The notes under the pieces were generated by a model. It saw only the letters and a program-made list of their open reading frames with translations. It was not told the origin of the DNA and made no database searches. Positions 1,201 through 39,910 of a stretch of 39,910 nt of DNA are shown here, piece by piece. Numbering within the stretch: position 1 is the stretch's first letter; every line of letters starts with the position of its first letter. The position numbers and the translations under genes are program-made. The DNA comes from Macrostomum lignano. Lineage: Eukaryota. The stretch lies in the NCBI GenBank assembly GCA_002269645.1, contig NIVC01004639.1, positions 1-39,910 on the forward strand, read 5' to 3'.

Positions 1201-1370
1201 TCAGCATCTGTCGCTGTTTCCGCTGTTGCAGCAGCACGAATCGCCAGCAGATCTTGTCAAGTTCAGGCAGATCTGGCTGTCCCACTTCCGGTCCGCCAGA
1301 GTGTAGCTGCTGAGCATTGAATCAATGATGCCGAACTTTGCGTGCAGCCGGTTGATGGTGACGTCCAAGT
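1201..1370 (-). CDS. Terminal exon: cytoplasmic tail (DLDVTINRLHAKFGIIDSMLSSY...C*)
   Basis: Acceptor ttcattcag|ac, phase 1, joins the donor at 1678. Amphipathic coiled-coil-like start; TGA at 1201-1203. The exact stop is uncertain (see findings). Confidence 0.65.
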
Positions 1371-4300
1371 CTGAATGAATTTCAGAGGTTGGCGGTTAGG
1401 AAACGACTTCACCAGGGAACAACTTAAACTAGCTATTGGATTCAGACCAGCAGAAATGGCATTTACATAACTACGATACTGTTAAGGAATTTCAATAAAC
1501 GTAACGGAATCGCAGCTTCATTTCTTCACGTTTAAAGGTGAGATTTTTGCAACGAAAATACTCGTAAGATATAGGAAAATACAAATCGGTACTACCGATG
1601 GGCACATGCTATACTGTGTGTAACTGTTCATATCCCGAATACTGCATGTAGATAAATTTCAGTTCCAGAAATTTTACCTGTACTCTCCTTGTAACTCGGC
1701 GCCGCAGCTCGACTAGAAACGAAAGTGTCGCGCAGTCTCTGCAGAACGAACTGGACGATCTGGAAGTCGCTCGAGCCACCGGCCCGCTCTGCGTTGGCTC
1801 CCTGGCCCCTTCGTAACTGTCGTTGAGAATGACCACAAACAGATTGACTACGATGAACATCAAGAAGGAGACGTACAGAGAGAACGCGAGCTTCGGGAGC
1901 AGTCCGTGGCGGCTGACTGTGGCCATGTCGAACTTGCCGAGCATCGCCGAGAACAGAGTTGACATGGTGCCGAGGGGGAGCTGAACTGCAGCTGCACCGG
2001 CCCGAGCAGCTGGTTCATCAGCCAGCAGAAGGCGAAGAAGATGACACAGAAAAATACGGCGAAAGAGCTCAACTTGCTGAGCGAGGATCGCAGCGTGCCG
2101 AGCAGGTGGCCGAGGCTGGCGCTGAACCTGATGAGGCCCAGCAGCGACAGCTGCAAAAGGAAGCAGGAGAAGCCGAGCGAGTAAAAGAAGAATTCGTTGA
2201 GCAGCAGCAGCTGACGTAGCTGCGGTCGGCCTCCGTTCACCGCAGCCTCCAGAGCACTGCCAGTGCCGGCTGTGCGGAGACCATAGAAAACGCAGGCGAC
2301 CACCATGAAGATGATGACGCCCATGTCCAGCCAGTTCTCAAAGTTGGTCCAAAACTGGCGACAGTTTCGCAGCTGAATAGCCAGAAAAACGATGCGCAGA
2401 AGCAATAGAAGGCCGGCTAGAATCTCTGAGACCAATGCAAAGACTCCCACTGCACCCACGTAGCGGTACAGCCTAGTGCTAAGGAGCTGCTCGCTGGCGT
2501 GAGCACCGCCGAATGAATTGAGTTCCGATGCCATGGCAACCGCGGTGAACAGGTTCACGTCCGAGTAAAACAAGTCCAGCTCAACGACCAGCAGGCTGGT
2601 GGACGAGTCCAACCAGCCCAGGCGCTGCAGCTCGGCCAGGAAAGCTCGACTCGGCGCCAGTCCTTCCGGCAGCAGGGCCACAAAGCCGCCACCTCGGTAT
2701 TCGGCTAGAATTCCCGAGTACGGCGCACCGTCAGGCCGGTTCATGAAGGCCTGCTCAAGCGGCGACGCCGAGAGGTTGCACGGAGCTGCGGCAGTCCAGC
2801 CCGGCAGGAAGCAGCCGGTTTCATCAGTGCCGCTCGCTAACGGCGACTGGCGTTGCTGGCGAGGCCTTCTCAGCTGGCGCAGTGACAGCCGGCTCAGACG
2901 GTAGCCGCATCCGTCGGAGATCAGAAACGAGGCGGAGTCTGCGAAAACAGTAGGCAAGATGCTGGAGTTTATAACTTTGTACAGCTCAGTGGCAGTTCCA
3001 TCCACGGCAACCAGGTCTTTGTAGTTCAAGTGCTGCTTGATGCTTTCGTGTAGCCGGAAGGTTCCAGGGTCGATGTTGCCGTAGCAAATGCAGTATTGAA
3101 GCAGGAGCAGCAGCAAGGTGAGGACCAGCTTCACAGTGGCGCTGATGGCAGCCTTGCGGACCGGGTTCTGTCGAGCTTTGGCCTCGAGTTCGTATAGAAA
3201 TGCGATGCCCTCTGAAAATTTTTTGTTCGATTTGAAGCTGCCTGTCTAATTGAATGTGGTTATTTCAGATATGTACATGCAAAGAGGCAGTTCGAGAACA
3301 TCTAGTTCGAACTCTGTGGCCCCACTCCCCTTACTTGAGCACATCCTCACCCGCACTCAATAAAATGCACGCAATTCTGCTATATCAGACAATAAATACA
3401 CAGGCGCAGCCACCACTTTTTGAGTAGTTAACTAACACTCGCAAACTCTAGCCAGAGTTGCTCGGTTTTAATAGAAAAGACATTCCTTGAGCAATCAAGG
3501 AATACTATAAGTTAGCGGTAACTGTCCTTGGATCTTCTCCAAGGAGTTTCTTCAATATCTTTTTGGTTGTTGTCCTTTAGATCTGCTTCGTGCTTCCAAC
3601 AGGCATGCAAAGAGCGCACGTTCTCTCAAAGTGCACTAACTCGTAGTAAAAGTCAAAGTAAAAAGCAATAATTTTAATGCTTCTACTGATAAACGGTTGC
3701 GGCAAACATTTTAAATCTTTGCTCACCTCTCTGATGCTCTTCGTTGAAGTACCTGACTCGGATGAGGGTGAAGTTCTCAACGTCGTAGTCTTTTCGAAAT
3801 ATCACAATTAAGACGAGGCCAATCAGTGCCACCTGAAAATTAAAAAAATGGCCTAACTAATCGCTGAATGAGTTCAACCTAAAACTGCTATAACCATAGC
3901 TTAGTCCTTTAATTATAGCCCCCTATTCATAACACTATCCTTGCCTCAATCACATCATGGACTTTGGATTCTCAAAAGTCTGGGACGCAGCTATGCGAGC
4001 TTTTGAGCAAGAAACTACTGAATATAAAACGATGGATAGATGGTGTCAGAGAAGAGATCCTCAATATTGTACAAAATGTTGAGACTTAAGCTTTCGTATG
4101 GGAGGAGCAGCTTAGCGTCTGACTCCCGTGCCTCGAGCCCTGGTTCGATTCCAGGGTCACATTCAATTTGAGCTTAGTATGAAAAATTGGCCGAGGTTTT
4201 CGTGCGATTCGCACCCACGGGGGCCGATTCCCAAGGCACAGAGAGTGTGTACACCCTGTGTGAGCATGAGTGTCATGTTTGCTCAGGAGTCCGCGGAATG

Positions 4301-7300
4301 GACAAAATTTCCTCGGCACTGATTGCGGGACAATGTCGCGGAAGGCGTTGTGCCAAGGTGCCCACAATGCTCCCCTGTGATTATTTTTTGCTTATTTTTC
4401 TATGATCGTACAGTTGAATACAACTCAACTAGCTTGATAAATAGATAAATGTTGACTTGCAAACCTTCAGCGGCTGTACTAGAAACGCGGTCTGAACAAA
4501 CGACAGCACAAAGGAGAGAAGCCACTGCTGGGACTTCTCCTTGCCCCACTGCATAGCGTAGAACACGAGGAAGACCCCGGCGCCGAGCATGCTACCCAGA
4601 ACCAGCGCCCAGCCCACGTACTGGCACCAGTGCGGCAGCTGGAATCCCGTCGACGGCATTTCGCTCGCCTGTGGCACCAGCGGTGTGCTGGCTGGGTTAC
4701 TAAAAACGTCTTTGGATTTGAGCGTCCTTGAATCAGCTGATTTTCTAGATCGATAAACAATTCCGGTTTCAAGCTGAAATGAATTTGGAAAATAAGTAAT
4801 AGATACTCAATAAATAACTAAGCAATGGTACCAACCGCACCTATCTGTAGTACAAACGCACCTATGGACTTTGCAGCCCTTAAACTTAAAGAAGTGCGGC
4901 GAGTTCCCTAATTTTTACAGCTCAAAAGCATTTTTTTCTGTCAAGCAATGGTTTTACAGATGTGCCGCAGTTCACGGTTGCTATTGGCAAAGATATGAAA
5001 TTTAGGAACGAATGAAATAAGGGTGAATATGTGGGTTTAAGTACCGGTATATGCGGATAATAAATTTACTCACTAGATCAAAGACCCCGTCATCTGTAGT
5101 ACTCTCCGACTTCTCTCTGGACTCTTTCATTGCATCTGAATTCTCAAGAGAAGAACTGGGCGTTGCGGAATTGCTTGCTGATCTTTTGGACTTCAAAAAG
5201 AAAATAGTGACAGCAGCTGAAACTGGCACAACAACAACAGCGCCCAGCATGGACGTGAACAGGGTGTTGACTGACAGCTTGATCGGTCCGATCGTGATCG
5301 TGTCTGACGCTGACTGGCCCCCCTCCCCAACACCGTAAAACATGGCATTGGATATCATGGTTAAGAAGAGCAGACAGAAACAGACGCCAAATCGCTGCAG
5401 CCGAGAAAAGTTCGTGTCAGTTTTACGCTTGACCACCGACATCCACAGGTGATCGTCGAGGAACTTTCGCGACAGATTGTTCCTCACAAAGCGCTGCTGG
5501 AATGCCAACTGCTCTTTGTTCGCCAATGCTATCGCAATAGGCTCTTGGTACGGCAGGATCGTTTCGGATGAGTTGAATATGTAGCTGAAAAATTAAATAT
5601 TTCTTCTGCTGATCAAGTATCAGGAATCCAGTGAAGTTATCGTTGTGAAAACATACCTGACATTGTACAAACAATCTGTGATAATTATTTTCTGCAGCAT
5701 CCACGGAGAAATTGGTTTCTGTCCTTCAAGCGAAATTTCTATCTCGAGAATGTCACCCAGATGTTTCCCTGTTGTCATTGTGAAGTGATTTATATCACCC
5801 GGCTGAAAATTCTAAAAAAAAGTTAGTTGAAAATATAAAAAAATTTCACTTTACTGTTTCAGCCAATGGATTTCACACTGTCGTTTTCTTACCTGTCGAA
5901 TCCCATCAGACATAACTCTTAGCGGTTCTCTGTGAAGTTCACCCGAAACCGATAGTAGCGGGCATATCCGGGTTCCAGCGTTGCTTCTATCGCTGGCAGT
6001 GTACACGTCAATCCTGTAGACAAACTTTTCATTCGCATCGTCGATCAGAGGTAAATACTTAAACTGAAATTTTTTTCGAGAAAGGTGTTTGCTTTTTATC
6101 TTGACGACGAATTTTAATTCCGAAGAATCAGCGGTTTAAAGCATGTTGGCAGAATATCCAGTCTCACCCTTTCGCTGTCTTTGTTGTCAATGCGACGCAA
6201 CCAGACAGCAATCGGGATGAAGATGACCCAAAGAGCCACCACGGTGCCCACAACTGCAGCGCTGTCCGCCAGCTTTCCCTGCCAGTTGTCGAACAGCTTG
6301 CCGAAATCGATGAGATTCGGCAATACATTCATTCCCGCGCCAAGGCTACCGAAGAGGTTGCTGACGAACCTCGGTCGATTTGGGACATCGGACGCTTCGA
6401 CAGTGCACGAAGCTCCAGCAGTTGAAGGCTTCGTCCAGATCTCCTGGGCAGAGTCCCAGATGAGACAATCGTACTGAGACAGACCAAACTCGTAGGACAG
6501 GCTCGGGTCAGCACAAGAAGAGGCTACCTCGCCGCTGGGCTCCCGGTAGCAACCGTCTCGCTGGACTCCGATGAAATAGGTACCGTTGGAAACTGCAGGT
6601 AGATAGAACGAGCCTTGGCTAGCGTTCGTTAAATACTCCAATGGAGTCGGAAGGCGGTCGAGCTGCACAAAGACCTGCAGTGCGTGGCTGACATTGAGTG
6701 GTAGCACTGTCACCTCCAGGACTCCAAAGGTGACATTCACGCTGTGATAAAAGCTCAGCCACCGATCCGTCGGGGTAGCATTGACCACAGATTTTTCGCC
6801 GGCCGCTGTTGCAGGTAAAGAGAAGGTGAAACTTTCCGAGCTGGAAGGCGCTGCAGCGCGACGCGAGCGGCAGCCTCTCTTATCAATCATGAGGACAGGC
6901 GAAGCAACGGATGTCTTCGGTTGCCACACATACGGGCTGCGGCCTGAGAACACAGCCTTAACTGAGTCGCAGCCGCTCAGCTGTGGCAGACTGGCGTCAC
7001 CCAGTGCCGACTGAAAACTAACGCTATCGTTGCTTCCATTAAGGCGAACTCCCTGAACTGACAGTGCGGAATCGGAGATGGAATAGGACCCCGAGCTGTT
7101 GAGAAGAATTTCCGTTACATATTCAACAGTTGTGAGAACAGACTCTATTACTCCTCTGACTTTTGCGCTAAGCTCTTCGGTTCCAGTTGCTGGGGTAGTC
7201 GAAAGACAATTTATCTGACTCGAGTTTGAGCAGGCGCTTTCGTTGTTGGCATTGTTGGCCTTTGCAGTGGCGTCAGATGCGGACCAAATATTCGAGCCAG

Positions 7301-10300
7301 TGAACACAATATCTGTTTCGTGTTGCGTGTTGCGCGGTTCGTTCGTGATAGAAAAGCTGTTTAATAACCCGATAACACAATACGTAAAGGGAGGAATAAC
7401 TGTTGCTCTTACCTGAACCCATAAGCGGTTGCACGTCTTTTTGGAGTTTTTCTTTAAATTTTCCAAAAGAATCCGTAACTTCTTGAAGCTTTGAAGCACC
7501 GAGCTCCTGAGACAAGCATTTAATGGGTGAAATAAGTGGGTGAAGCTTTTTACAGATTCAGATTCAAGTATCCAAGGAAAGCACCGAAAGTATCTTGGCT
7601 ACAGCAATAAAGGTACTTACCTGCGCATTAACCGTAATCTGATCTGTTCGGTCAGGGGGGAAAGCTGTCCTCAATACGTCATTTGTCTGCTCCAAATCCT
7701 CGGGAGAGTTCAAGCTGAAATTGGCGACCACTTCGACAAGCTTCGTACGCAGCTGAAAATATAGTGAGAATACTAGCTAATATTGCATACTAGCTTGTGC
7801 CAAAACTGCTTGTTATCATTGCCTTTTCAATAACCATGTGAGTGATAAATCTGAGCGCATATGCTACTTACCTCCGCCATTCTTCTATTAAACGCCGTCC
7901 TTTCTTCACTCGTAGCATTTGCTCCTTCAGCATCTTCATTCTTGGCGTTCATTACCGACGTCAAGCACATAAGAGTGGTGGCAGCTCCCTGCTGGTTGCC
8001 ACTCTTCAAATGCTGGCTTAATTTATCACTTGTTCCGTCCATTATGTCCGAAATGCCCGCGAGAAGCTCAGATGCGGGAATTGCCGGCGGATAAACCTGA
8101 AGCGGGACGAGTAAGAGTATTTACTAAGCTTGCGAATGCTTAAAAACGATTAAGAAATTAAAGAATTTGAACAAAACAGTGCAGGCAGATTGGGTGCTTA
8201 CTGTGACATCGAAAATGAATGCAATTTTATCGCCTAAACTGTCAACGACATTTATGTAGGCGTCAGTCTTGTACCCATGAGTCGAAGAACCGACCGGAAG
8301 TACTACCTCCGGAGAGACAGCCGTCGGTCCATAGAACAGTAGAATAGTGCGCAGGTGTCCTTTGGGCCTGATGCGGTATTCGTAAGTCAAGCTGGATGCA
8401 GTCACATTAAACTCCACCCAGCTCCAGCATGAGATGCGAAATTTAGTTTCCATGGCAATGCCTTCACGTGGCTCGATCGTGCAATTGCCTCCACTGGCTG
8501 GTTTATTAACAACAAAAGTCTTTGAAACAGTGAAAGGACCCTCCTGAGCGAAGCTTGATGCCGACACTTGAACCAGATAAACAACACCTGGGATCAAAGT
8601 GTTTTCTCTGCGAACGATTCAAAGAATGGGGTCGATTTTACTTCTCAAAGTAATTCGTTGAAAACTGATTTCGGTGACCAAACTGTTACTATGTTAATTC
8701 TCTTGAGGTGCAACTCACCCGATTCAGTGAGAACAGCCAAATCCTCAAAGCCGCCTGCTTGCAACTGCCGCATGGCCCATGTAAAGGACAGGTTATCAAA
8801 TTTTGTACCGCAATTTTCTTTGCAGGATGCCTCGTAAGCCAGGGGAATACGTGCAGATACTTTTTCAGCACAATTACTGACGCACCTGAAAATAGGTTTA
8901 TAATCAGCTGATTTAGGGTATTCGATTCAAAGAAAATTATCTGAAAAACAGAAGAGAATATAATTTACCCAATTAGTATTGTTGGCAAGGCCTGGGGACT
9001 CAGGAATATGGTCCACTCACTAAAAGCTGATCTTGAGTCCTTGAAGACATCAACTCGTAGAACATACGACAAGTTGGGCATCAAGTGCCATGTGCTCAGC
9101 ACTAAAGCAGCAGCAGTGTGTTCATTTCCCTCGGAAATGATTCCAACTCCATTTCCAAAACAGCCTCTGAATTCTGCAGAGCCCTGCATGTCTGGAGGCC
9201 TTATAAAGCTGGTGCTGGGATTAGGAGTCAGTTCTGATTGCTGCATGCAAATCCACCGAAAGGACATCGCAGTCAAGTTCCCGGCCTCTACATCCCAATC
9301 ACGCGCGTCCAGTTCAAATCTAACAGTTCGATTATAAGCCACAGACACAGGTGAACTGCTGCTAAAGTTGACGCTTATCGGTGTTTTTGTTATGTTTAAA
9401 TAGAAAGCAAACTCTGCAGAAACCGGAGGTGTCACTTCCGCCATGGACAAGTTCAACACAACCTTATACAGGCCGTACCAGAGGGAGCGCGGCGGAAGTC
9501 GAAAGCTAAGTAAGTCCGGAAAGCTGAGATTCGTCACGGTCCCAGTCACAGTTTCCACTCGCCATCGTCGCATTGTAACACCGGTTTTCGAACAGTTCAG
9601 CTCAGGCAATCCGCTGACTAGAACTTCTTGCGATCTCATTTGTTGCAAAGGCATTCTGGGGTCCCACTGGGCCAGTTGGACGCCGAAATGCGAGAAGTTT
9701 AGCTGTGGGGCCTCGCACATCCAGTCCATGATAGTCGCCAGAGTCTCGGCTGTGTCATTGCTCACGTGATTAAAGGCGAACACGGTAGCAGAAAACCCAC
9801 CGAGGTGTGGGTAAATGTGACTGAAAGAGATCGACATGTTCTCATAGGAGATAGCAGTGAAATTGATTCCACGTGATGCTGAGTACGGCTGGCATAATGC
9901 AGGCACGCCAAAGCTGATATTTGTTGAGTCTCCAAAGTCAACTACAAAGCAGCCGTTTGTGCCGAAGCGAGTGATATTAAGAAAAAAGTATGTCGCGTTG
10001 GAGAGCAAAGTAGTTCCATTGGTTCGGAAGCTGCCAATGATCACAGCGTCAAGGACAATGTCAACTGTGATCGGAATGCTTTGAAATGAGACCAGATTAG
10101 AGCAGTTCAGACTGAAGTTTCTTACTCCCAATGCAGCTCTAGTGAATTCTTGAGCAAGTGTCACTTCGCCAACAGTGCTTAAGCTGCTCACATACAAGTA
10201 TCGAGAGCCGAACTGGGCCCAGCTGAACATGCAGTGTAGGTTGTTCAAATCTACCTCTGAGCTGGATAAACGAAACTGCACCTCCGCGGGTGTGTAAAGC

Positions 10301-31300: not shown

Positions 31301-34300
31301 CAGCTGTTTGGACCGGCTGGTGCTCGGGCTTCCGTGGGCTACGCAGGCCGACGTGAAACTTCCTCCGTAACTCGGTCTTTCATCGGCAAATGCTACGTGA
31401 CCCAACTGCAGCGTTCGACTATTGCCTGAGTAAAATTTCACCAAGTTTAAGAGCTAAATAATTATAATAGTAACTATAAACATATATAAGCCATATAGAG
31501 CAAGTTTGTATTGATAGCTCAATGTGGCTAAAGATGAAAGGTAAAATATCATGCTTGCATTGGGTTTTCGTACCGGACCCTTGCTGCGCCTGCGCCAGTT
31601 GACACGCGAACATTTGCTTTTCACCATCAGCCGCTGCCACCAGCGCTGCCTGACTGGTGCTCCACAGGCCATAGACATCTCCCGGCTGGCCCAGCTTCCA
31701 GTGGCTGCTGGGCACTGGGGTGCCGTCGAGCCACTGCCAGACGGAACCGCTTCTCACAATTCCCACGTGAATCAGGTAGTCAACCCTGTGGATTCACAGC
31801 ATGTAGACATTGGGGTGAATCGTTAGTAGTGGTCCAACTCATAACAATGGTCTGGCTGCTGATATGCTTTGTACATGTTAGCTAATGAATTTAGGGTACA
31901 AAAGAACGAGTGCTATGACGTATTGAGTACTATTTGTGCTGGCAAATCAGCTTTTTAACGCTCCTACATCGCTTCTAAGACAGATTTCTAGTCTTTTAAA
32001 AAGATAAGCATTGTCATTTTCGGTGCAAAACACTATTTTATGGCTCTGGCATGTGGTAACGGAATTCTCTTAATGAATACTCTTAGACAACAATTGACCA
32101 AGTTAGTTTTGCCAGTGCGAATTCATGCAAACAGTAAAAGTATTCTCGACTAAGTTGATTGCCAGTGCAAATCTGTGGGAATCTATCATATAAATATCTG
32201 TAAGGACTCTCAGTACTTGGAAAGCTCACCAAACAGCCAAGTAGCTCAGCACAGATGCATCCTTCGGCATGAGCAGGTCGCCTCGGGTGCCGGCCCACAC
32301 AAACGAACGACAGACTCTTCGAGCCGAGTCTCTGAGAGCCAGCACGGGGCTCAGGTGCAGGCAGGTGTCACCCATGGGCACGAATCCTGGCGGGCAAGGG
32401 TCGGACTGCTTGCCCAAGAAGGTGACCTCGTGCTGCTGCAGAGAGCCATTGGTGAAGTGAATTTTCAATTCGATCGGCGCCAGAAGAATCGGGAACTCGA
32501 AGTTCGCTTGCAGGGCTCTTGTTTCGAACTGAAAGCGCAATTTTTGCAGCTTTACTGTGCTACACGTAGAATTGGCTACACCAGCAAGTTGCATAGTAGC
32601 AGAGGTGAAGATCTTACCATCCATATGTCTCCCTGTACTTGGAGTGTCGCACTTGGCTCTCCATCAACTTCGTAAGTAATGTAGAAGCTTAGGAGAGAGC
32701 TGGTAGTTCTGTTTACCGCTATCCTGCTCAGGTGGTAGAATGAACTAAACGTCACAGACAGAGTGGAGGTCCCCTCTAGCTGAACAATCGCTTCCCTGAT
32801 AACTTCGGCTGCTAAAAAGTTGGATATACTTGTAGTCTGTCAAGTAATACAATTCAATCAATATATTCTGATGAATCATTGTGTCAAAAAGATTTTGACT
32901 CACCTGGCTCATTAGGATAGCCAACTAAGTCAATTTTCAGCTGCCTTCTTCCACAGCTGCCTGTCACTTTGACTTGCACCAACTTGGCCAGTATGGACCG
33001 TTGAAAATTGACTCTGGCGGTCTCTACGTAGACTTTTGGCCCGTCAAATGACACCTAAATGTTAAGTTTAAGTGGAAGTCTTCTGGCTACGCTTTACAAA
33101 TGTTGGAGTATTTCTCTGCTAAAAGATCCAACGCAATCTTGAGGGGATGCAGAATAGCTCCACTGCAACGCGTCTGGTTATCGCCCTAAAGTGCGTTCAA
33201 ACTCGTTCTGTGGCTTGTCATGCGATTTACGCCCACGGTGGTAAACCTCAAAGAAACAGAGTATGCACACATGTCTGACAATAGACAGTTAGGTCCGTTG
33301 TACATTCTGTACGAGCGTGTACATGCGCACGAACCCGTGTGCGTGCTCAGAGGTCAGCGGACTGCGCATGACTGCGGGTCGACTGTCGTCTGATTTGCGG
33401 CAGTGCCCGCAGCCCTTCTGCAAACTAACAAATTCAGAACGCACACTTGAGCACTATTTTTACTTCTTATTTTAAGTTTGGATAGAAAGAGGAAAGAAAA
33501 GAATGTAAAGTTTACAATGAAATTGCCTCTTTCAAGGTTCTTTAAAGTGTTTACTTCTCAAAACAGCTTCCCCAATTAGTTCGGGGGTTCACTTTCGTTG
33601 CCATGGGTCCCGATTACTGCGGCAGTGAATTTCACATCGTCGGACAATATCTGGCAATGTAGCCCATGGCCTTGACTGGCACGAGAAGCCTCAGACCAAT
33701 TGCCCAGCACCAATCACAAAATTTTGTGACCGCACGTGGAATCGAGCCCGTGGACTCTGGCTCGAGAATAGGACGCGTTTCACTCTGCCATCCAGCCACT
33801 TAAAATAGCACCACTACCCCAAGTTTCTTCGGTAAAGCGTCGCTAACCCTCCGATCTAGCTCTTCGACGATATGCGACTACCTCCCAATCCTGACTTTAT
33901 CGCTGGCTCACGAACTCTTAGCAGCAAAAGCAGCTGGCAGAAATCATTTCAGTTTTCAACCACTCCCGAGCCGCAGACGAAACTGGTATTTTAGCAGCTC
34001 TAGTTCGAGGCCTAGGACAAATGCTATGATTTCTCAACTTTGTTGTTATTATTACTACTGCGCTGTTTTAGTGAACTCCATTTAGCTGATGAACAGCCGG
34101 TTTCAGATTGAAAATTGACAACTGATAGATGAAATATTGATTCCTACCACTTACCGTGGAACCGTCATGCAGATCTGTGAAAGGCACAAGTTTTTCACTG
34201 TTTCGATCAGCCGAATAGAACACCTGAAAGCTGGTGACCATGCCGTGCAGACTATCGAATCGTCTGTAGCCGCCCGAATCAGCAAGCCAGTCAGTGCATA

Positions 34301-37300
34301 CGTGTAAGGCAGGTACAGAGAGAGCCAATCGCTGACAGGGTCAATGAAAGCATGGTGGAAGCTTTCGTCGCCCGGAAAATCCAGCGGCAGCGAGTACATG
34401 TCCGCGCAGTAGTTGCACACGCTGTCGACGTCGGCATGCTGAACACCGGTTGAGGGGAAACGGCTTCCAAAACCGATTGCCACGTCGTATGCTTTGGGGA
34501 TGTTGGAGTCTGTGACATCTGGCACGGTGGCGGGGCATTAGAAGAATCACAAAAATGCTTTGTTTCTCATGCGCAGGGTTTTAATTGGACTCTTTATTGC
34601 TTCCGGGATGCTGAATACTATTGAATTTGAGCTCAATAATCTCAATACTAAGAAAAGGTTTCTTTTGAGATCCATCCAAGGTACGCTTGTAGATTAAGGA
34701 TTCAATGAACGATTTCTTCGCCTAAATTAAGCATCTTATTGTTATGCGTCTGACCTAGTTCGAAAGACTCGTGATATTTCCGTAAGCAATATCCTGCTTC
34801 CAAGAATTGTTACAATTAGAGGTTACGTTATACGAACTCGTATTTTATTAGTACGCAGTGCGATAAAGGACAAAAATGTTTTAGAGGCTCACTTAGCGGA
34901 TTTCCGTAGATTTCGAGCTCAGTAATTTTCAACGTACAGTCTGGAGTGCAGAGACTGGTGTTAGTCTTAGCCAAACCCAGCATTCGAGCGACCTTAAATG
35001 CAAAAGTTTGATAGGCAAGATTCCCAGAATTATTTAGTATTAATATTTTAGTAGCAGTGAGACGAATAACGCAAACAGCTCATTCGAGAGTCAGCTCGAG
35101 CATATCTTTTCGGTACCACCGTAAACCCTTGGGGCAGTTTCACTTTGGCTTGTGTCAGATCGTTGATGAATTCTGAACTTCCATAACGAGTATGTCTCTA
35201 TCTTCTTGGTTCATTAGGTAAAATACTTTCTCCTCTGCAGTAAGGTTTTTAAAATTAAAAACTTTATCCGAAATTTCCTGTTTGAATTTATCACTATAAA
35301 AGGGAGCACTGTAACAGTTACAAGTTACACTTAAACAAGAAGTGAACTTCACTTTCTATTCCCATATGGCACTTTGGACAGGTCTTGTTCTCTTAGTCTT
35401 TGATCTCGCAGTCCTCATTATTTCGCTACTCGTCAATGTTGACAGTTTCACATGATTTCGCTACTCGTCAATGTTGACAGTTTCACATGATTTCGCTACT
35501 CGTCAATGTTGACAGTTTCACATGATTTCGCTACTCGTCAATGTTGACAGTTTCACATGATTTCGCTACTCGTCAATTTTGACAGTTTCAAATGATTTCG
35601 CTACTCGTCAATGTTGACAGTTTCAAATGATTTCGCTACTCGTCAATTTTGGCAGTTTCACATGATTTCGCTACTCGTCAATGTTAACAGTTTCACATGA
35701 TTTCGCTACTCGTCAATGTTGACAGTTTCACATGATTTCGCTACTCGTCAATTTTGACAGTTTTACATGATTTCGCTACTCGTCAATGTTGACAGTTTCA
35801 CATGATTTCGCTACTCGTCAATGTTGACAGTTTCAAATGATTTCGCTACTCGTCAATTTTGACAGTTTCACATTTTTAGCTGTGATGCCAACTTTACTGT
35901 AAACTGGTTTCCCAACTGGTCTCGAGATGATGGAGTCTGGGCGATTTGCTAGTGTGGTCCGGTACTGAGTAATTCTCTTTGGATATTACATGATAAAGAC
36001 AGTCTGTCTAGCTCTGAGCGGGCTCCACTACTGCCAGTATTTTCGCTAACTTGTAGAATTTTCCTGCAAGCTCTGAACTGATCCTGAGTTTCGAATGAGT
36101 AGATTTTCGGAAGACAAGCGCGCTCTTTTACACTGCCATCTAGCAAGTCATCGAATTATCCGACTGATGTAAAATGGGAGGAAAAATTATGCACAAGCCG
36201 TGGGATCGTAAAAAATTGTCTTCACGATCCTGTCAAGTGACGAGTCGTAAATACTGCATAGTGTGGTCCGAGAACAAATTATTAGAACTGAATAAAATGC
36301 GACTGGAGGGCACAGGGGCGTCGCCATGGATTTTATGGTGGGGGGACAAAGCCTAGAATTCTACATGACTAAATTTCTACATTACTTTGGGATTTTGTTG
36401 TTTGCCACGATCACTTTGGCGCCGCATGCATTCATGGCGCTGTATTTTGTCACCCCGAAGCAAAACTATTGATCTCCATAACGTTCTCCAGGACTCCAGG
36501 TGGGGAGGGAGGACAATGTCCACCCATAGTTTTTACTGGGGGGCGGGGCATGTCACCCTGACGCTGTCCCTCCCGGTGGCGACGCTCCTAAGTGGGCAGA
36601 AATATAGCAGGTTGATGAGGCAGTCGTACTCAGTTACTTTGTAAAACATCCTGATTTAACTGCATACTGCATCGCATAATTGTTTGTTCAGTCCGCTATG
36701 CAGCTAAAAGAGCCCCTCACCATGCCAACGTTAACCCGCCACGGCTGCTTCAGTACGGCATAAAAGTTCCGCGCGACGAAAATTGAATCGGCTTCCGAAT
36801 AGGCCGACTTGTTGGTAGCGAATGTGGCTAAGTAGACATTTTTCTCTTTTGAGGCCAAGTCTGAAACAAAGAAGACAAATAGATTTAGGATGAAATTTGC
36901 ACAAGAGATTTCCAGAATGGGTCCGTTATTCGTTCGTTATTCGTAATTATAATTTGGCCAGATGTGCAACCGACAGCTCAGCCGCAGCTATTGCGTGGCG
37001 CATCTGAAGGATGTGTACGGCTGTTCAGTCCAAGGACTAGGGGGTCGCCACACACCCTCAATTACCCCAGCTGATGCTGGCACCCATTTTACAGCTGGGT
37101 GAACTGAAGCAATGCAGAGTTAAGTGTCTTGCTCAAGGAGACGAATTTTTCCAGTGGGATCGGGAATCGAACCCCGACCTTCAAGTCGTGAGTCCGACGC
37201 TCTGACCACTGGGCTACAACTCCAATTGTAGGATAAGCAATGCTTACTGTAGTGGTGCAAGTTGTAGCCGAATACCAGAGCAAATTCGATGTATCTCAGC

Positions 37301-39910
37301 GACACAAAGTCAACAGCAATCCAAGGTCCTGCGCTTTCGACATTCCAAGTTGATGCGAAAGGTTTTCTACTTGCGTCAGTGATATACTTGGCGGAGGAAA
37401 TGTCGCTGCTGACCAGAGGTAAATAGCGGGACATGAGCACAGGTGGCGGATTGTAGGCTGTTCGATCTGAAGAAGCAAAAATTTGACTGCGCACTTTTTG
37501 AGTAACTTTTAATATTTATATTTAGTTATAGTTGTAGATAGCTCATACTTGACAGACAGCCGTACAGCATCCAGCGCGACTCCCACCGGTAGTAAAAGGA
37601 AACCCTGTACATGCGAAACATTTTGCCAGTCAGTTCCGGGAACAAGCCATGCAGAGAGGTGTACGAGTCTGTGCGGAGTTTTCTGGCCGCGATGATTTTC
37701 TGCGGGTGATTAATCAAGCATGTTATTACAGAACTGTTGACCAACAATTTTATCATTGGTAAACCCACGAAAAAAAGTATTAAAAAAGAATGACACCAAA
37801 TTGAGCATCTAGCATTAGTATTTCTTACCAAAGGGTACGGAACAAAAGACTCGCCATCAGTTGAGTGAGACAATATTAAATATCTCGGGTATTGTAAATT
37901 GCCCAGCGCTCTGTCAGTTCCGCTCTGAGTTGCCAGCACAAAGGCTGTGACCGAATTCAAAAATGACACCTACGTATAAATTTCGTTTCGATATAACAAA
38001 TTAATTAGAAAAGACAGCTTTACGGGGAATGAAAACAATTAATTCTGCATTTAGAAAAGAGCATCTTGCCTGAATGTATTGGTCATATGAAGCACACCCA
38101 GAAGGAAAGTTCAGTGAAACCATTGGAGACCAAATTCCAATTTGTCTGTCATCTACAATTTTTAAACAATGAATGCAGCATCTTCATCATCAAGTTCATA
38201 TCAGTGTAGTACAAATCTCAATAACTTACTGGGCATGTCAAACATTACGTGAGCCCTCGTGCTGTCTGATCCATCTCCCAGAGTGGTGTAGCCTACTGTT
38301 TGGATCTGCAGCCCGTTAGTTGGGCTGGGAACTGTCAGGTTGGCGAGTAGAACTCCACCAATGCTGACATCGACTCCCAGCTGCGTCCAGACCAGCTGCA
38401 GGCTTTGATAGTCGTCGGTGGTGGCAGCGACTGAGCCGCTGGCGCCCGTCAGAATCATGGAGGCCAGCGTGCTCGGGCTGGATGAGTCTCCAGTGCGAAC
38501 CGCAGCCTCGCTGAGGAATGCGGCGGTGCCGTTGCCGCCGATTGAGATCTCCCAGCGAGGCTGCGAGTGGATGGGATGTTTTCATACCGTTGAAGCACAT
38601 GCGACAGATTTAAAATCAGAAATTTCATGACCTAAACTAATTGAACTAGCGATATATAACTGTATGAATAAGTTCGATTTAAGAATATTATTACTTCGTA
38701 CCTGCTTTCAATTTACGCTTCTGGGTAATAAAACTAACTAAAGTGCCAGCTTATGGTAAGGATACTAAAATATTGTTTCGCTGAAAAAAGGGCGATAGCG
38801 GAAGCCAATAGGGGTCTCCTATTTACCTGCATATGCTGTCTACTGATTATGGGTTTGTAATTGTAGATTTGCGCAAGGACAACTTAATCCCTAAGGACGG
38901 TAAACTCGAAAATCATGGCGAAAAAAAAGTTAGAGGCTCGTTTAAAAGCATTGTTCTATGGCTAAGCCTTATAGAATCTGTAAGTATATAATACACTTTT
39001 TATTAAATTGCGCTGTGATTGCTTTAACAATTAAAACATTAGTAAAAATTAAGAAAACAAAGCAAATATCAGAAACTTGACCAACAGTATAGGAAAGAGC
39101 CACGTTTTGTATATACATTTGCACAGTGCATAGTGAATATGCCCCCCCACACCCCTGGCATTAGTAAGGCTTTCAGTCAAAAGGGCTCTTTGGGCCGTAT
39201 GCAGAAAGCTCTGTCTAGGTAGTCCGGTCTTGAAAAGCTAGTCTGGACTTGGATTTGGTATGCAGAAACGCAAAGTTAGACCGGTCTACTGTAGACAGAA
39301 CTAGGGTAGCTAGACCATAGACTATAGACTGAACTACCCAAGTCCGGACTAGCTAGTCTGGACTAAGCTTTCTGCATCCGGCCGATTATATGAGGCGTGG
39401 CCATAGAACATTCTTTCAAACGAGCCTCTAATTTTTTTTCGCCATGATTTTCGAGTTTACCGTCCTGAGTGATTAAGTTGTCGATGGATTTGCTTTACTA
39501 ACATCATGATTTCACCATGGACTTACAGAGTTGAGGACATCGCGCATGCTCGTACCGATTGGTCAGCCACAGCTTCAGTCCGGAATTCCTTAAGCGGGCA
39601 AACATTTTCAGCGTGTTGTTTCGCTGTATAGAATCGGAGCTCATTATTTTGGCTGGCACTCGACGAATCAGATACGGATATGTCCCGGTTTCTTCAAAAT
39701 TTTCTGCAGTTTACAGATATTAAAGATCGTTAAGGCTTCCGTTCCCTCTTATGTATTTGAGTACTTGCTGAATATTACTTTAGTATACATTTAGCCGACT
39801 AACCTTCCTCCGCATGCAGTTGCAGGGTAGTGATGGAAAGCTTTCCTATCGCCAAACCCTGCAGAAGCACGTAGCGACCAGCAATGGCCTCTCGCACCAG
39901 AACTTCAGCG
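1201..39910 (-). CDS. Multi-exon polycystin-1 (PKD1-like) family gene, 5'-partial, about 63 exons and about 6,300 aa in window; 4 apparent frameshifts
   Basis: Exons with AG/GT(GC) boundaries and matching phases, in transcript order: 39804-39910, 39516-39703, 38230-38560, 38070-38152, 37829-37969, 37549-37699, 37248-37466, 36721-36860, 34893-34992, 34155-34518, 32904-33054, 32618-32811, 32230-32528, 31574-31785, 31135-31425, 30950-31066, 30687-30854, 30158-30384, 29593-29847, 27222-27388, 26678-27130, 26445-26591, 26131-26281, 25768-25998, 25521-25663, 25352-25439, 25089-25274, 24363-24574, 24097-24241, 23792-23988, 23580-23709, 22583-22790, 21972-22207, 21591-21836, 21383-21517, 20838-21043, 20109-20733, 19848-20032, 19607-19742, 18631-18823, 18058-18296, 16986-17243, 15686-15837, 15429-15596, 14759-14915, 14056-14625, 13834-13977, 13086-13654, 11464-12549, 8969-11370, 8719-8885, 8202-8587, 7872-8096, 7621-7752, 7413-7506, 6168-7312, 5893-6063, 5657-5802, 5074-5584, 4465-4773, 3727-3832, 1678-3211, 1201-1370. 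The order PKD-REJ-GPS-TM-PLAT-10TM is diagnostic of the family. The specific paralog was not determined. Confidence 0.93.
1678..3211 (-). CDS. Polycystin channel region exon: TM6, TOP domain, TM7-TM11 and pore; two frame breaks
   Basis: ORFs 1860-3134 and 1609-1965 contain Y.GGGF..L, LQRLGWLDSSTSLLVVELDLF, LYRY, WNFENWLD, TLFSAMLGKFD and VNLFVVILNDSY, all polycystin/PKD_channel motifs. Acceptor ttttcag|ag at 3211, donor g|gtaaaa at 1678. Confidence 0.93.
3727..5584 (-). CDS. Exons for TM2-TM5 (5074-5584, 4465-4773, 3727-3832)
   Basis: DDHLWMSV, FSRLQRFGVCFCLLFLTMISNAMFY, GFQLPHWCQYVGW, QWLLSF and QPLKV are typical PKD1-family segments. Splice phases 2-0, 0-0, 0-1 are consistent. Confidence 0.92.
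4100..4400 (+). mobile_element. Probable tRNA-derived SINE (family 2)
   Basis: Pol III B-box GGTTCGATTCC at 4142-4152 inside a ccctgg...ccaggg stem, then a GC-richer body and a T-rich end; intronic. The A-box is degenerate. Confidence 0.5.
5657..6063 (-). CDS. PLAT/LH2 domain exons (5893-6063, 5657-5802)
   Basis: Not in the ORF track; translated by hand: YRIDVYTASDRSNAGT and GDINHFTMTTGKHLGDILEIEI...PWMLQKIIITD, matching the PLAT pattern that follows TM1. Confidence 0.85.
6168..7312 (-). CDS. GAIN/GPS-like region and TM1
   Basis: CLIWDSAQEIW...SCTV...PNLIDFGKLF followed by hydrophobic AAVVGTVVALWVIFIPIAVWLRR.D..D. Acceptor acag|at, donor agg|gtgaga. Confidence 0.9.
7413..8885 (-). CDS. REJ domain and post-REJ helical exons (8719-8885, 8202-8587, 7872-8096, 7621-7752, 7413-7506)
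   Basis: GCVSNCAEKV..., PASGGNCTIEPREGIAMETKFRISCWSW and LPVG...AYINVVDSLG match the REJ pattern. All junctions are phase-compatible. Confidence 0.88.
8969..11370 (-). CDS. Large exon: PKD (Ig-like) repeats and start of REJ
   Basis: 793-aa ORF with repeated PKD-like strands (YQINLGNG, IDCGDG, VDFGDS followed by H.Y...G.F.....A.N.VS) and many N-x-S/T sequons. Confidence 0.9.
11464..13654 (-). CDS. Exons 13086-13654 and 11464-12549: Cys-containing Ig-like modules plus first PKD-like repeat
   Basis: Long ORFs 213 and 374 aa; phases 1-0 and 0-0 fit their neighbours; a shared C..L..(V/L)C...S(F/Y).(D/E)...NN..C motif recurs. Confidence 0.8.
12629..12907 (-). mobile_element. tRNA-derived SINE (family 1, copy 1)
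   Basis: tRNA-like head (GTTCGATTC B-box) and central GTGTCCTTGAGCAAGAC...CAGCTGTAAAATGGGT block; homologous along its length to 16569-16862 and 36956-37223. Confidence 0.9.
13834..13977 (-). CDS. EB/EGF-like cysteine module
   Basis: Hand translation AIGEACNADASCSLTGDTVCLSSGQLLDTRCSCRKGFVRVGVECKS; phase 1-1 exon. Confidence 0.75.
14056..14625 (-). CDS. Fibrinogen-related (FReD) domain exon
   Basis: DWMIVYR, YQAGF, WPGLQVLSDLT, LRFD, STFSNFD...CA...GSGWWY..C...LTG and I.W follow the fibrinogen C-terminal domain pattern; phase 1-1. Confidence 0.85.
14759..15837 (-). CDS. Discoidin (F5/8 type C)-like domain exons (15686-15837, 15429-15596, 14759-14915)
   Basis: YFLT|ITFNKQVRVTGFGFMG and QQLRIMPAQYRGAAAFKFDIFGC match discoidin core and C-terminal motifs. 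Confidence 0.8.
15081..15396. mobile_element. MITE-like element flanked by TTAA, with terminal and subterminal inverted repeats
   Basis: ttaa|cagtagaaagacca at 15081 and tggtctttctactg|ttaa ending 15396. A second inverted match: 15090-15119 versus 15331-15360 (27/30). Confidence 0.7.
16016..16568 (+). repeat. 16-bp G-rich minisatellite (GCTTAGAGGGGTTGTA), about 34 copies
   Basis: Period 16 read directly (e.g. 16035, 16051); variants T/A and G/T; abuts a SINE head. Confidence 0.95.
16569..16862 (+). mobile_element. tRNA-derived SINE (family 1, copy 2)
   Basis: GGGGATTGTAGCCTAGTGGTTAGAGCG...GGTTCGATTCCC head with A and B boxes, same body as the other copies, AT-rich tail. Confidence 0.9.
16986..17243 (-). 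CDS. Cys-containing exon, possibly PAN/apple-like
   Basis: DCSRPFYNVIFNYSG...SALVKCQAGACNSL...ICR; strong splice sites, phase 1-1. The domain name is tentative. Confidence 0.65.
17517..17896. repeat. Polypyrimidine (CT-rich) low-complexity tract, about 380 bp
   Basis: Almost only C and T on the + strand. Confidence 0.95.
18058..18823 (-). CDS. C-type lectin domain 3 (18631-18823, 18058-18296)
   Basis: CPVNFYYHEGAC...AEAYC and WSHWAPSQP...CA...WTSVDC...HVICQ; split by a phase-2 intron. Confidence 0.88.
19607..21517 (-). CDS. Two discoidin-like domains and an unassigned beta module (21383-21517, 20838-21043, 20109-20733, 19848-20032, 19607-19742)
   Basis: EEWLQVDFLHKVTVQSVAMSG, FRLYPLHLTGRLAGKLELFGC and YLELTPRHYYGDARLQFAVL are discoidin motifs; phases are consistent. 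Confidence 0.82.
21591..24574 (-). CDS. Cassette B, distal part: discoidin, degenerate discoidin, C-type lectin 2, unassigned module
   Basis: Exons 24363-24574, 24097-24241, 23792-23988, 23580-23709, 22583-22790, 21972-22207, 21591-21836. Motifs LRFELLGY, ECPTNSLRHGRFCY...AQSICQ, NNWA...DCL...WRTVPC...FLCE. Confidence 0.85.
22998..23302. repeat. 32-bp minisatellite (CATGAGACATGCATGTATATCTAGCTGATCTG), about 9-10 copies
   Basis: Period 32 (23141, 23173); shorter variants at the left end. Confidence 0.93.
24629..25072. repeat. 25-bp minisatellite (GAAATCCCGGGCATCCCAAACTATA), about 18 copies
   Basis: Direct tandem units without spacers; fills most of intron 24575-25088. Confidence 0.95.
25089..27388 (-). 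CDS. Cassette B, middle part: FAMeT-like, discoidin, F-type-lectin-like, start of discoidin
   Basis: Exons 27222-27388, 26678-27130, 26445-26591, 26131-26281, 25768-25998, 25521-25663, 25352-25439, 25089-25274. Motifs AVDGN...C...HWLVSLG, FCEFEIYG, VRLYPRKWQNGLELRWQLYGC, YINSAIGLEDGRV. Confidence 0.85.
29593..31066 (-). CDS. Junction exons and F-type-lectin-like domain (30950-31066, 30687-30854, 30158-30384, 29593-29847); one frame break
   Basis: NIAYFK...SC..MT...LVVDFKSLHFINGV and LYVGNS...C...IAC...RFLAL...LNITALMVYG resemble fucolectin-type domains; all exons are phase 1-1. Confidence 0.75.
31135..34518 (-). CDS. Cassette A, distal part: discoidin (one frame break), degenerate discoidin, C-type lectin 1, unassigned module
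   Basis: Exons 34155-34518, 32904-33054, 32618-32811, 32230-32528, 31574-31785, 31135-31425. Motifs SDWLSLYL, VTSFQVFYS, LKIDLVGY, CPPGFVPMGDTCL...ARRVC, WQWLDG...HWKLGQP...FACQ. Confidence 0.85.
33560..33799 (-). mobile_element. Probable tRNA-derived SINE (family 3)
   Basis: Minus-strand head TGGCTGGATGGCAGAGTGAA...GGGCTCGATTCC with A/B-box-like motifs; body unrelated to family 1; 3' end approximate. Confidence 0.55.
34893..39910 (-). CDS. Cassette A, proximal part: end of F-type-lectin-like domain, FAMeT-like, discoidin, F-type-lectin-like
   Basis: Exons 39804-39910 (cut by window edge), 39516-39703, 38230-38560, 38070-38152, 37829-37969, 37549-37699, 37248-37466, 36721-36860, 34893-34992. 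Motifs AGRYVLL, WEISIGGNG, DQYIQ|VSF, HSTDGESF, WMLYGC, LKITELEIYG. Confidence 0.8.
35155..36170 (-). mobile_element. Decayed 3' part of a non-LTR retrotransposon (LINE ORF2)
   Basis: FRACRKILQVSENT...RSELDRLSL (post-RT segment) and C-x2-C-x8-H-x4-C (CPKCHMGIESEVHFLFKC, 35327-35380), with stops and frameshifts. Clade not determined. Confidence 0.7.
35420..35873. repeat. 35-bp minisatellite (ATTTCGCTACTCGTCAATGTTGACAGTTTCACATG), 13 copies
   Basis: Period 35 (35421, 35456 ... 35841); few substitutions. Confidence 0.95.
36313..36590. mobile_element. hAT-like MITE, 278 bp
   Basis: TIR CAGGGGCGTCGCCA versus TAGGAGCGTCGCCA; flanks ggagggca and agtgggca form a 6/8-matching 8-bp TSD. Confidence 0.7.
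36956..37223 (-). mobile_element. tRNA-derived SINE (family 1, copy 3)
   Basis: Head GGAGTTGTAGCCCAGTGGTCAGAGCG...GGTTCGATTCCC; homologous to the other two copies; starts about 25 bp from the donor at 37248. Confidence 0.9.
38878..39482. mobile_element. Foldback/MITE-like element with about 95-bp inverted repeats
   Basis: 38878-38973 aligns with the reverse complement of 39387-39482 (shared GGACGGTAAACTCGAAAATCATGGCGAAAAAAAA...TTAGAGGCTCGTTT). Confidence 0.8.
39193..39383. mobile_element. Nested small MITE with 18-bp TIR
   Basis: ggccgtatgcagaaagct (39193-39210) versus the reverse complement of 39366-39383, ggccggatgcagaaagct (17/18). Confidence 0.7.

Follow-up and report, generated by a model that had tools for sequence, protein, structure and literature searches.

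A probable 5'-truncated gene in Macrostomum lignano for a giant receptor of the polycystin-1 family with many ectodomain modules of lectin type

Known relatives of the gene considered here include human PKD1 and PKD1L2/PKD1L3 and the sea-urchin proteins SpREJ1-10, polycystin-1-family molecules in which PKD repeats, a REJ domain and a PLAT domain accompany an 11-transmembrane (11-TM) core with a TOP domain, and whose ectodomains are of lectin type (C-type lectin (CTL), WSC, SUEL), with one or two lectin domains, none of the discoidin or fibrinogen type, in proteins of 1,450-4,303 amino acids (aa). SpREJ1-10 themselves span 1,450-3,716 aa and carry CTL, EGF, SUEL and WSC modules (PMC1934368). 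Among flatworms the family is represented by pkd1L-1, pkd1L-2 and pkd1L-3 of the planarian Schmidtea mediterranea, which have been described with simple ectodomains, and the same study places a complex N-terminal ectodomain only in chordate polycystin-1 (PC1) (PMC11448475). We have analyzed a stretch of 39,910 nucleotides (nt) from Macrostomum lignano (contig NIVC01004639.1, positions 1 to 39,910, hereafter the window), whose minus strand is likely, between 39909 and 1201, to be occupied by one very large, 5'-truncated gene for a polycystin-1-family (PKD1-like) 11-TM receptor/channel subunit. Common to this gene and the human and sea-urchin proteins are REJ, PKD repeats, PLAT and the 11-TM core, and its ectodomain is unlike the simple ones described for the planarian genes. 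An earlier reading of the DNA letters (the original prediction) had proposed a giant polycystin-1-family receptor with a multi-lectin ectodomain, and in outline this description is right.

The C-terminal 2,500 aa of the encoded protein are a clear polycystin-1-family core. Its parts follow one another as PKD repeats, REJ, a degenerate GPS region, TM1, PLAT, TM2-5, TM6, the TOP domain and TM7-11 with the pore, the count of hydrophobic segments for the 11-TM topology having been read by eye. In Pfam searches the PKD repeats (PF00801), of which there are three stretches in all N-terminal to REJ, gave 34.9 and 37.1 bits, and REJ (PF02010) gave 177 bits (E 7e-52, profile positions 39-449 of 452); an exon of 2,402 nt at 8969-11370 lies in this PKD/REJ stretch. 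PLAT (PF01477), situated in the first cytoplasmic loop after TM1, scored 25.2 bits (cut-off 23) once the splicing had been corrected by hand, while Polycystin_dom scored 63.6 bits and PKD_channel 65.4 bits (profile positions 6-223 of 225), both after the correction of two frameshifts that are discussed below. The best solved-structure match in a search of PDB sequences was human polycystin-1 (6a70_B, E 7e-32), covering TM1-PLAT-TM2-3 and TM4-TOP, with the PLAT-TM2-5 region aligning with residues 63-343 of that chain; PKD2 and PKD2L1 align over S1-S6 at ~E 1e-26. The pore region is TRPP-like and, according to the alignment consensus, has the 'LGK' filter motif typical of PKD1-like proteins. The PKD-REJ-GPS-TM-PLAT-10TM ending originally proposed is therefore retained for PKD, REJ, TM, PLAT and channel but not for GPS, which is degenerate and without a Pfam match.

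The gene model was derived by splice-aware dynamic programming with GT-AG introns, phase bookkeeping, and self-trained content (periodic Markov) and splice weight-matrix scores. The minus strand is the richer of the two in open reading frames (ORFs) of at least 60 aa, 13,719 aa in total versus 9,030 aa for the plus strand, and its longest ORFs, of 801, 494, 461 and 386 codons, are intact. The initial model joined 63 exons into one chain of 6,039 aa, with its frame open at 39909 and the last base of a TGA stop at 1201. Both limits and exon count agree with the original prediction, so that an independent method arrives at the same observation. The ab initio model is biased against AT-rich exons and contained at least six demonstrable errors, which we corrected by hand using homology: two PLAT exons were mis-spliced, exon 8 was cut short, two exons had to be extended and the pore/S6 region had been jumped over. 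One predicted exon (rc 6494-6607, numbered on the reverse complement) was rejected as false; without it, two broken F5/8C matches (12.7 and 5.0 bits) merge into a single one that scores 24.9 bits. When a per-base bonus was added, the program regained some exons but predicted too many (70-80), and this variant was kept only as a source of alternatives. In the curated model the coding sequence of ~18.6 kb has no in-frame stop apart from the frameshift sites. What had been read as a phase-consistent chain of 63 exons and about 6,300 aa keeps its limits and strand, at ~61 exons and ~6,211 aa, but its phase is broken by three -1 frameshifts. Because exon 1 corresponds to the C-terminal strands of a module, the true N-terminus and the signal peptide should lie outside the window.

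Two independent protein models from M. lignano bear on the splicing. A0A1I8G5W4 (P0157, 435 aa), the sole protein retrieved with ectodomain exons as query, carries the UniProt label 'CUB domain-containing' and matches the spliced exons 23-30 (25998 to 23580) without gaps at 432 of its 435 residues (99% over eight exons). For A0A1I8J599 (P0004, 596 aa) the agreement is 247 of 250 residues in exons 52-54 and 325 of 338 in exons 55-56 (96-99% over five exons). Together they confirm 10 of the 60 splice junctions gaplessly, and they place the sequence in M. lignano or in an almost identical copy of that genome. Several fragmentary M. lignano entries, including A0A1I8G5W4 and a REJ-domain fragment close to A0A1I8J599, are in this way merged into one gene of >6,200 aa. 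A0A1I8J599 departs from the curated model at one point, where it joins exon 54 to an internal acceptor ~348 nt into exon 55 (6168-7412) and skips 116 aa. The skipped part aligns with the homologs P0003, P0002, P0011 and P0066, so that the short form would be either a mis-prediction or the product of an alternative acceptor.

Upstream of the PKD repeats the ectodomain extends over >3,300 aa and comprises ~24 modules as counted by exon groups, close to the roughly 25 of the original prediction. It is composed of repeated cassettes of discoidin (F5/8C) modules, small beta-sandwiches, C-type-lectin-like domains (CTLDs) and unassigned Cys-containing modules, and a fibrinogen-related domain (FReD) and an EB-like module adjoin the PKD repeats. 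Module assignments were tested with Pfam at E up to 5, hidden Markov models (HMMs) trained on homologs, hhalign, searches of PDB sequences, and AlphaFold2 models, built from sub-sequences of A0A1I8G5W4, that were submitted to Foldseek. By these means ~7 discoidin modules, three CTLDs and one FReD are supported. One discoidin module, in 16986..22790, exceeds the cut-off of the Pfam profile F5_F8_type_C (34.7 bits versus 28.2) and three fall below it (E 1e-4 to 0.04). A profile of the seven modules in the window matches Pfam-verified annelid domains (hhalign 98.1%, E 1e-13; hmmsearch E 1e-22 and 1e-24), factor VIII C domains (E 6e-10), CASPR2 and neuropilin match by sequence, and the model of exons 26-30 retrieves the tandem discoidin domains of neuropilin (b1b2) and factor VIII (C2) at E 2e-11. 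The original prediction had counted about nine discoidin-like modules.

All three of the C-type lectin modules proposed are found by the homolog-trained HMM as CTLDs (E 2e-6 to 1e-5; 1.7e-6 and 9.9e-6 for the CTLD 2 and CTLD 3 cassettes), and Lectin_C of Pfam detects one copy, in 16986..22790, at 22.1 bits against a cut-off of 22.6, with CTLDs in the PDB matching at E 1e-3. The fibrinogen-related module is matched by Fibrinogen_C (PF00147) at 30.5 bits, above the cut-off of 22, by a homolog-trained FReD HMM at E 1e-19 and by tachylectin-5A at E 4e-4, and the alignment with P0011, a paralog from M. lignano, extends over the fibrinogen-related as well as the EB exons. The match of the EB-like module (PF01683) is weak, 20.3 bits and thus below the cut-off of 24.3, but its position after fibrinogen is conserved in P0011 and P0006.

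Of the other module names, F-type-lectin-like is weakly supported, and PAN-like and 'FAMeT-like' could not be upheld. The modules read as F-type-lectin-like, at least four in number, match neither PF22633 nor PF00754, score 0.4% in hhalign against the F-lectin-type domains of homologs, and lack in the alignment both the fucose His/Arg/Arg triad and the 'NRxDCC' (CC) motif. For one of them a low-confidence AlphaFold2 model (predicted local distance difference test (pLDDT) 56.8, predicted template modeling score (pTM) 0.57) has the fucolectin 3CQO as its top Foldseek match (E 8e-6), followed by 1K12 and SpX modules, a result possibly biased by the F-lectin-type sequences in the input alignment and one in which generic galactose-binding-like folds score almost equally. 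PAN-like modules gave no Pfam match at E up to 5, nothing with a homolog PAN HMM and 0.2% in hhalign, and their sole support is positional, since they follow each CTLD as PAN_1 does in proteins of Dimorphilus. The two 'FAMeT-like' modules, which we call repeat 'A', are mutually paralogous (27% identity, E 5e-6 in an ORF-level blastp), but Methyltransf_FA (PF12248) matches neither copy at E up to 5, nor anything in the homolog set. No CUB match was obtained in the window protein at E up to 5, and the small beta-sandwich modules that precede each CTLD are probably the source of the 'CUB' label in UniProt. Profiles of the F-lectin-like, PAN-like, CUB-like and 'A' modules of the window found nothing in 155 homologs and nothing by hhalign. 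A Pfam scan of the concatenated minus-strand ORFs from the 5' 15 kb of the gene was likewise empty, as split and diverged domains are invisible that way.

By analogy with the solved PKD1-PKD2 and PKD1L3-PKD2L1 complexes, the receptor would assemble 1:3 with a PKD2-like TRPP subunit. In planarians, pkd1L-1 and pkd1L-2 function in ciliated neurons that sense chemical and mechanical stimuli (PMC11448475), PKD1 of Nematostella is expressed in hair cells (PMC8846589), and on the strength of these planarian and cnidarian expression data the receptor would most likely act in ciliated sensory cells, with sperm as an alternative. Its ectodomain would bind extracellular matrix or surface ligands multivalently, or serve as a tether to them, and in this way control channel activity.

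The original prediction had gone further and envisaged a combinatorial glycan-sensing channel subunit, that is, a stack of active lectins reading glycans in combination, for example in gamete recognition as for sea-urchin REJ. We consider this unlikely. It is true that discoidin, CTLD, fibrinogen-related and F-lectin-like folds bind sugars in many other proteins, that sea-urchin REJ1-3 use CTL domains (PMC1934368) and that the top Foldseek match of one module is a fucolectin. However, all three CTLDs, as read from the model ('GQPGD...', 'ASANESGDC...MQWRTVPC' and 'PSQPAVGSC...AWTSVDC'), lack the EPN/QPD and WND motifs, and the fucose-binding His, both Arg residues and the CC motif are gone from the F-lectin-like modules. 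Moreover, proteins and lipids are ligands of discoidin and CTLD folds no less often than sugars are. With the canonical sugar-binding residues absent, 'glycan sensor' is speculation, and a multivalent binder or tether remains the description that we prefer.

The GPS region sets this receptor apart from human PKD1, which is cleaved at its GPS. The Pfam GPS domain was not detected in the corrected protein at E up to 0.1, and in an alignment with 14 homologs the GPS position, at 6200-6330 of the window, reads 'RFVSNLFGSLG' versus 'CxCxHLTSFG' in deuterostome and mollusc homologs, both Cys residues and the His having been lost. The motif is lost as well in M. lignano paralogs and in two giant proteins of the annelid Dimorphilus gyrociliatus, where the sequence is '(R/K)FTSNLFGS' (P0002, P0003, P0005, P0006, P0011 and P0066 in all); being shared in this manner, the loss is taken as a derived character of a subfamily. 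A Lingula protein shows a weaker version of the degeneration, 'FKSNFLGSF'. With the CxCxHL|T motif lost no autoproteolysis is predicted, and the receptor probably stays an uncleaved single chain. The loss may be the hallmark of a subfamily of PKD1-like proteins in Spiralia that remain uncleaved, and such a presumably uncleaved group would lend itself naturally to testing the role of GPS cleavage in polycystin function.

HMMER, run in full over 1.84 billion representatives, returned 3,576 relatives. The closest in architecture are two uncharacterized predicted proteins of D. gyrociliatus of similar size, DgyrCDS14438 (CAD5126282.1, 6,071 aa) and DgyrCDS14777 (CAD5126713.1, 5,543 aa), listed as P0006 and P0066. 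Like the window gene they have many F5_F8_type_C, Lectin_C and PAN_1 modules, then Fibrinogen_C, an EB-like module and PKD-REJ-TM-PLAT-channel, with a core identity of 32-35% and the degenerate GPS in common; they are also annotated with F5_F8_type_C_2, and one of the two has a signal peptide. They differ in that their modules score well against Pfam whereas those of the flatworm are far more diverged, in an F-lectin-type domain between fibrinogen and EB, and in that a copy of the 'A' repeat is not detectable. Within M. lignano, paralogs (PAA69298.1/P0002, A0A1I8JK18/P0155, A0A1I8HYH1/P0008 and others) have the same core and the FReD-EB-PKD-REJ order at 41-63% identity, and share the degenerate GPS and a 'MLGKFD' pore motif with the window gene. 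The longest of their shorter models has 3,185 aa, and lectin modules upstream of fibrinogen are missing from them, perhaps because of limited annotation. Judged by their sequences, the window gene, these paralogs and the two Dimorphilus giants are one subfamily marked by loss of the GPS 'CxCxHL|T'.

Amphioxus PKD1-like proteins (XP_078659501.1, 3,260 aa, and Branchiostoma lanceolatum 'PKD1L3' CAH1271112.1, 1,995 aa) also place several lectin-type modules (F5_F8_type_C, F5_F8_type_C_2, Lectin_C, PAN_1, Fibrinogen_C, F-lectin-type) on a GPS-PLAT-polycystin-channel core. In contrast to the window protein they are half its size or less, their modules are single copies rather than repeated cassettes, GPS is intact and there are extra LCCL, Xlink, trefoil, fn3 or EGF modules. 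In 12 other long PKD1-like proteins, from hemichordates, amphioxus, sea urchin, scallop, Lingula and snail, the core is the same and the ectodomains are quite different, including LDLa with Fz, SRCR, EGF, WSC and Laminin_G, from which it follows that module shuffling on a polycystin core is common.

The original prediction did not recognize the architecture, and our literature search found no paper on a multi-module discoidin/CTLD polycystin architecture nor on Macrostomum polycystins; however, the same modules occur in the same order in the two Dimorphilus proteins and a similar set in amphioxus. Its idea that an architecture annotated across many taxa would speak against novelty therefore holds in part, for proteins that are machine-named only. 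The architecture represents one lineage's variant within a known family, already present unnamed in public annelid and amphioxus proteomes, and existing knowledge of the polycystin family is left unchanged. The flatworm and annelid ectodomains are more complex than that of human PC1, contradicting the chordate-only statement of the planarian study (PMC11448475). A broader scheme, in which the Dimorphilus giants together with the window gene and its paralogs in M. lignano would constitute an old spiralian clade of single-chain receptors that have lost GPS autoproteolysis and use iterated discoidin/CTLD cassettes as a long multivalent tether gating a TRPP channel in ciliated sensory neurons, is rather doubtful. 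If true, it would mean a complex-ectodomain PC1-type receptor outside chordates, contrary to the flatworm literature. M. lignano is a transgenic model amenable to RNA interference, so that expression and function of the receptor are directly examinable.

Several points weigh against a single functional gene. About 20 of the 61 exons rest solely on the ab initio model, the N-terminal 1,100 aa of the curated protein being model-only while outside validation covers other parts of the chain; no transcript covers the whole chain, and public annotation of M. lignano has this locus in fragments, one of 435 and one of ~596 aa; M. lignano makes frequent use of spliced-leader trans-splicing (PMC5730564), with which adjacent same-strand units can be separate genes; and three -1 single-base frameshifts, two of them in the pore/S6 exon, have to be bridged in order to read one discoidin domain and the S5-pore-S6-tail region, and might reflect the decay of one paralog within a hidden-polyploid genome.

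The first shift lies in a run of five C at 1974-1978, where the S5 frame runs into nonsense while a three-frame view places the S5-S6 loop, pore helix and S6 in the -1 frame ('...TMSTLFSAMLGKFD...VVNLFVVILNDSY'); tblastn shows the homologs P0002, P0006 and P0008 continuing across it. The second, in 'gggccgg' at 1779-1785, ~190 nt beyond the first, restores a tail 'SSDFQIVQFV...' homologous to P0008 and P0002 together with the phase needed by the last exon. Correction of the shifts in the pore exon raises the PKD_channel score from 42.5 bits (profile positions 7-165) to the 65.4 bits given above. The third falls in a GGG run at 34273-34275 in a discoidin exon. A 50-nt intron in its place was tried and rejected, scoring 13.5 bits against 26.8 bits for the frameshift reading with a homolog-only F5/8C HMM (positions 30-144).

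Were these shifts real, they would destroy the discoidin domain and the pore/S6/tail region, and the locus would be a pseudogene, a decaying paralog or homeolog in hidden-polyploid M. lignano. The need for three -1 shifts to restore homology, the numerous M. lignano paralogs and the 4% by which A0A1I8J599 differs are compatible with this, but we regard it as quite improbable, given that all three shifts are in G/C homopolymer or near-homopolymer runs, that ~18.6 kb of coding sequence has no other in-frame stop and the long ORFs noted above are intact, that GT-AG is kept in all 60 introns, and that near-identical protein fragments have been called from another assembly. Published M. lignano assemblies are PacBio-based (PMC5730564), and for this reason, along with the G/C runs and the otherwise open frame, the three shifts are likely to be homopolymer errors of a long-read assembly in a gene that is intact.

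The lectin block and the polycystin core very probably belong to one gene. Two or more adjacent same-strand genes chained in silico only, a secreted or anchored multi-lectin protein (~14000-39909) and a PKD1-like gene (1201-~13650), would agree with trans-splicing, with a public annotation that splits the locus into fragments and with paralog models (P0155, P0011) that begin at the fibrinogen domain, but this is highly improbable, as in each of those same two paralog models fibrinogen and EB, which belong to the 'lectin' block, are continuous with PKD, REJ, PLAT and channel, as the complete series of modules is followed by the core, in the same order, within single proteins of Dimorphilus, and as no candidate boundary within the chain shows a Met with signal peptide, a stop codon or a long intergenic gap. 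Introns across the lectin/core junction are short, 78-179 nt, apart from one of 536 nt in which a short interspersed element (SINE) resides. The coordinates of all features are collected in Table 1.

Table 1. Features of the polycystin-1-family gene, in the order of transcription (window coordinates)
Feature	Position	Strand	Basis and remarks
Whole gene	1201..39909	-	Curated model: ~61 exons, 60 GT-AG introns (most 70-200 nt), ~6,211 aa; 5' cut by window edge
Exon 1	39804..39909	-	Open at window edge; C-terminal strands of F-lectin-like beta-sandwich module (motif reading only)
Repeat 'A' copy 1 ('FAMeT-like', exons 2-3)	38230..39691	-	Paralogous to copy 2
Exons 4-8	34893..37944	-	Partial discoidin-like (exons 4-5), F-lectin-like beta-sandwich (exons 6-8) ending '...CTLKITELEIYGNP'; motif level, no Pfam match
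Discoidin (F5/8C), exons 9-10	32904..34509	-	Readable solely across -1 frameshift 34273-34275; homolog-trained HMM 26.8 bits
Small beta-sandwich (CUB-like), then C-type-lectin-like domain 1, exons 11-13	31574..32811	-	CTL HMM 26.2 bits; PDB C-type lectins E 1e-3 to 3e-3
Unassigned Cys-poor module ('PAN-like'), then F-lectin-like, exons 14-17	29593..31425	-	Motif level only; hhalign negative
Repeat 'A' copy 2 ('FAMeT-like' 2)	26678..27388	-	Paralogous to copy 1
Discoidin, F-lectin-like, discoidin, small beta-sandwich	23580..26591	-	Exons 23-30 (25998-23580) spliced as A0A1I8G5W4
Cassette 1: CTLD 2, unassigned ('PAN-like'), two discoidin, small beta-sandwich; cassette 2: CTLD 3, unassigned ('PAN-like')	16986..22790	-	
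Discoidin-like, then fibrinogen-related (14056-14625), then EB-like Cys-rich (13834-13977)	13834..15834	-	
Cys-rich or Ig-like spacer, PKD repeats, REJ	7621..13654	-	Pfam; P0001, P0002, P0006, P0011, P0066 align
Juxtamembrane (GAIN-like) region with degenerate GPS, then TM1	6168..7412	-	Alignment with 14 homologs
PLAT and TM2-TM5	3727..6063	-	PLAT exons 5893-6063, 5657-5811, start of 5074-5584; hand splice correction
TM6, TOP/polycystin domain, TM7-TM11 with pore, proximal tail	1678..3211	-	One exon, two -1 frameshifts
Last coding exon with TGA stop	1201..1370	-	In phase solely with twice-corrected frame of preceding exon

A shared-word homolog search with the REJ exon returned only MEE4247216.1 (P0001), an entry of 863 aa on a 4.9-kb contig named 'MAG: PKD domain-containing protein [Kangiellaceae bacterium]'. 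It matches 8977-11607 of the minus strand and is, over its full length, 38-39% identical to the PKD/REJ exon of the Macrostomum gene; it probably represents animal DNA that entered a bacterial metagenome-assembled genome (MAG) during binning. Downstream of the stop, positions 1-1200 of the window hold only short ORFs and gave no RNA-family match, no feature there having been examined in detail.

The introns contain repeats of two kinds. A dispersed element of ~270-320 bp is present in three copies (12605-12908, 16572-16881 and 36951-37223), 81-89% identical and one of them inverted, all within predicted introns. Two copies have a tRNA-like head above the Rfam tRNA cut-off (34.4 and 30 bits), neither of which ARAGORN calls as a tRNA gene, and the element looks like a tRNA-derived SINE; these two heads are the only Rfam tRNA matches in the window, which has no tRNA genes. 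Five tandem arrays, also intronic, make up most of the longer introns: a 16-mer (36 copies, 16016-16585), which abuts one SINE copy, a TC-rich tract (17534-17895), a 32-mer (8 copies, 23033-23302), a 25-mer (18 copies, 24621-25072) and a 35-mer (13 copies, 35416-35873).

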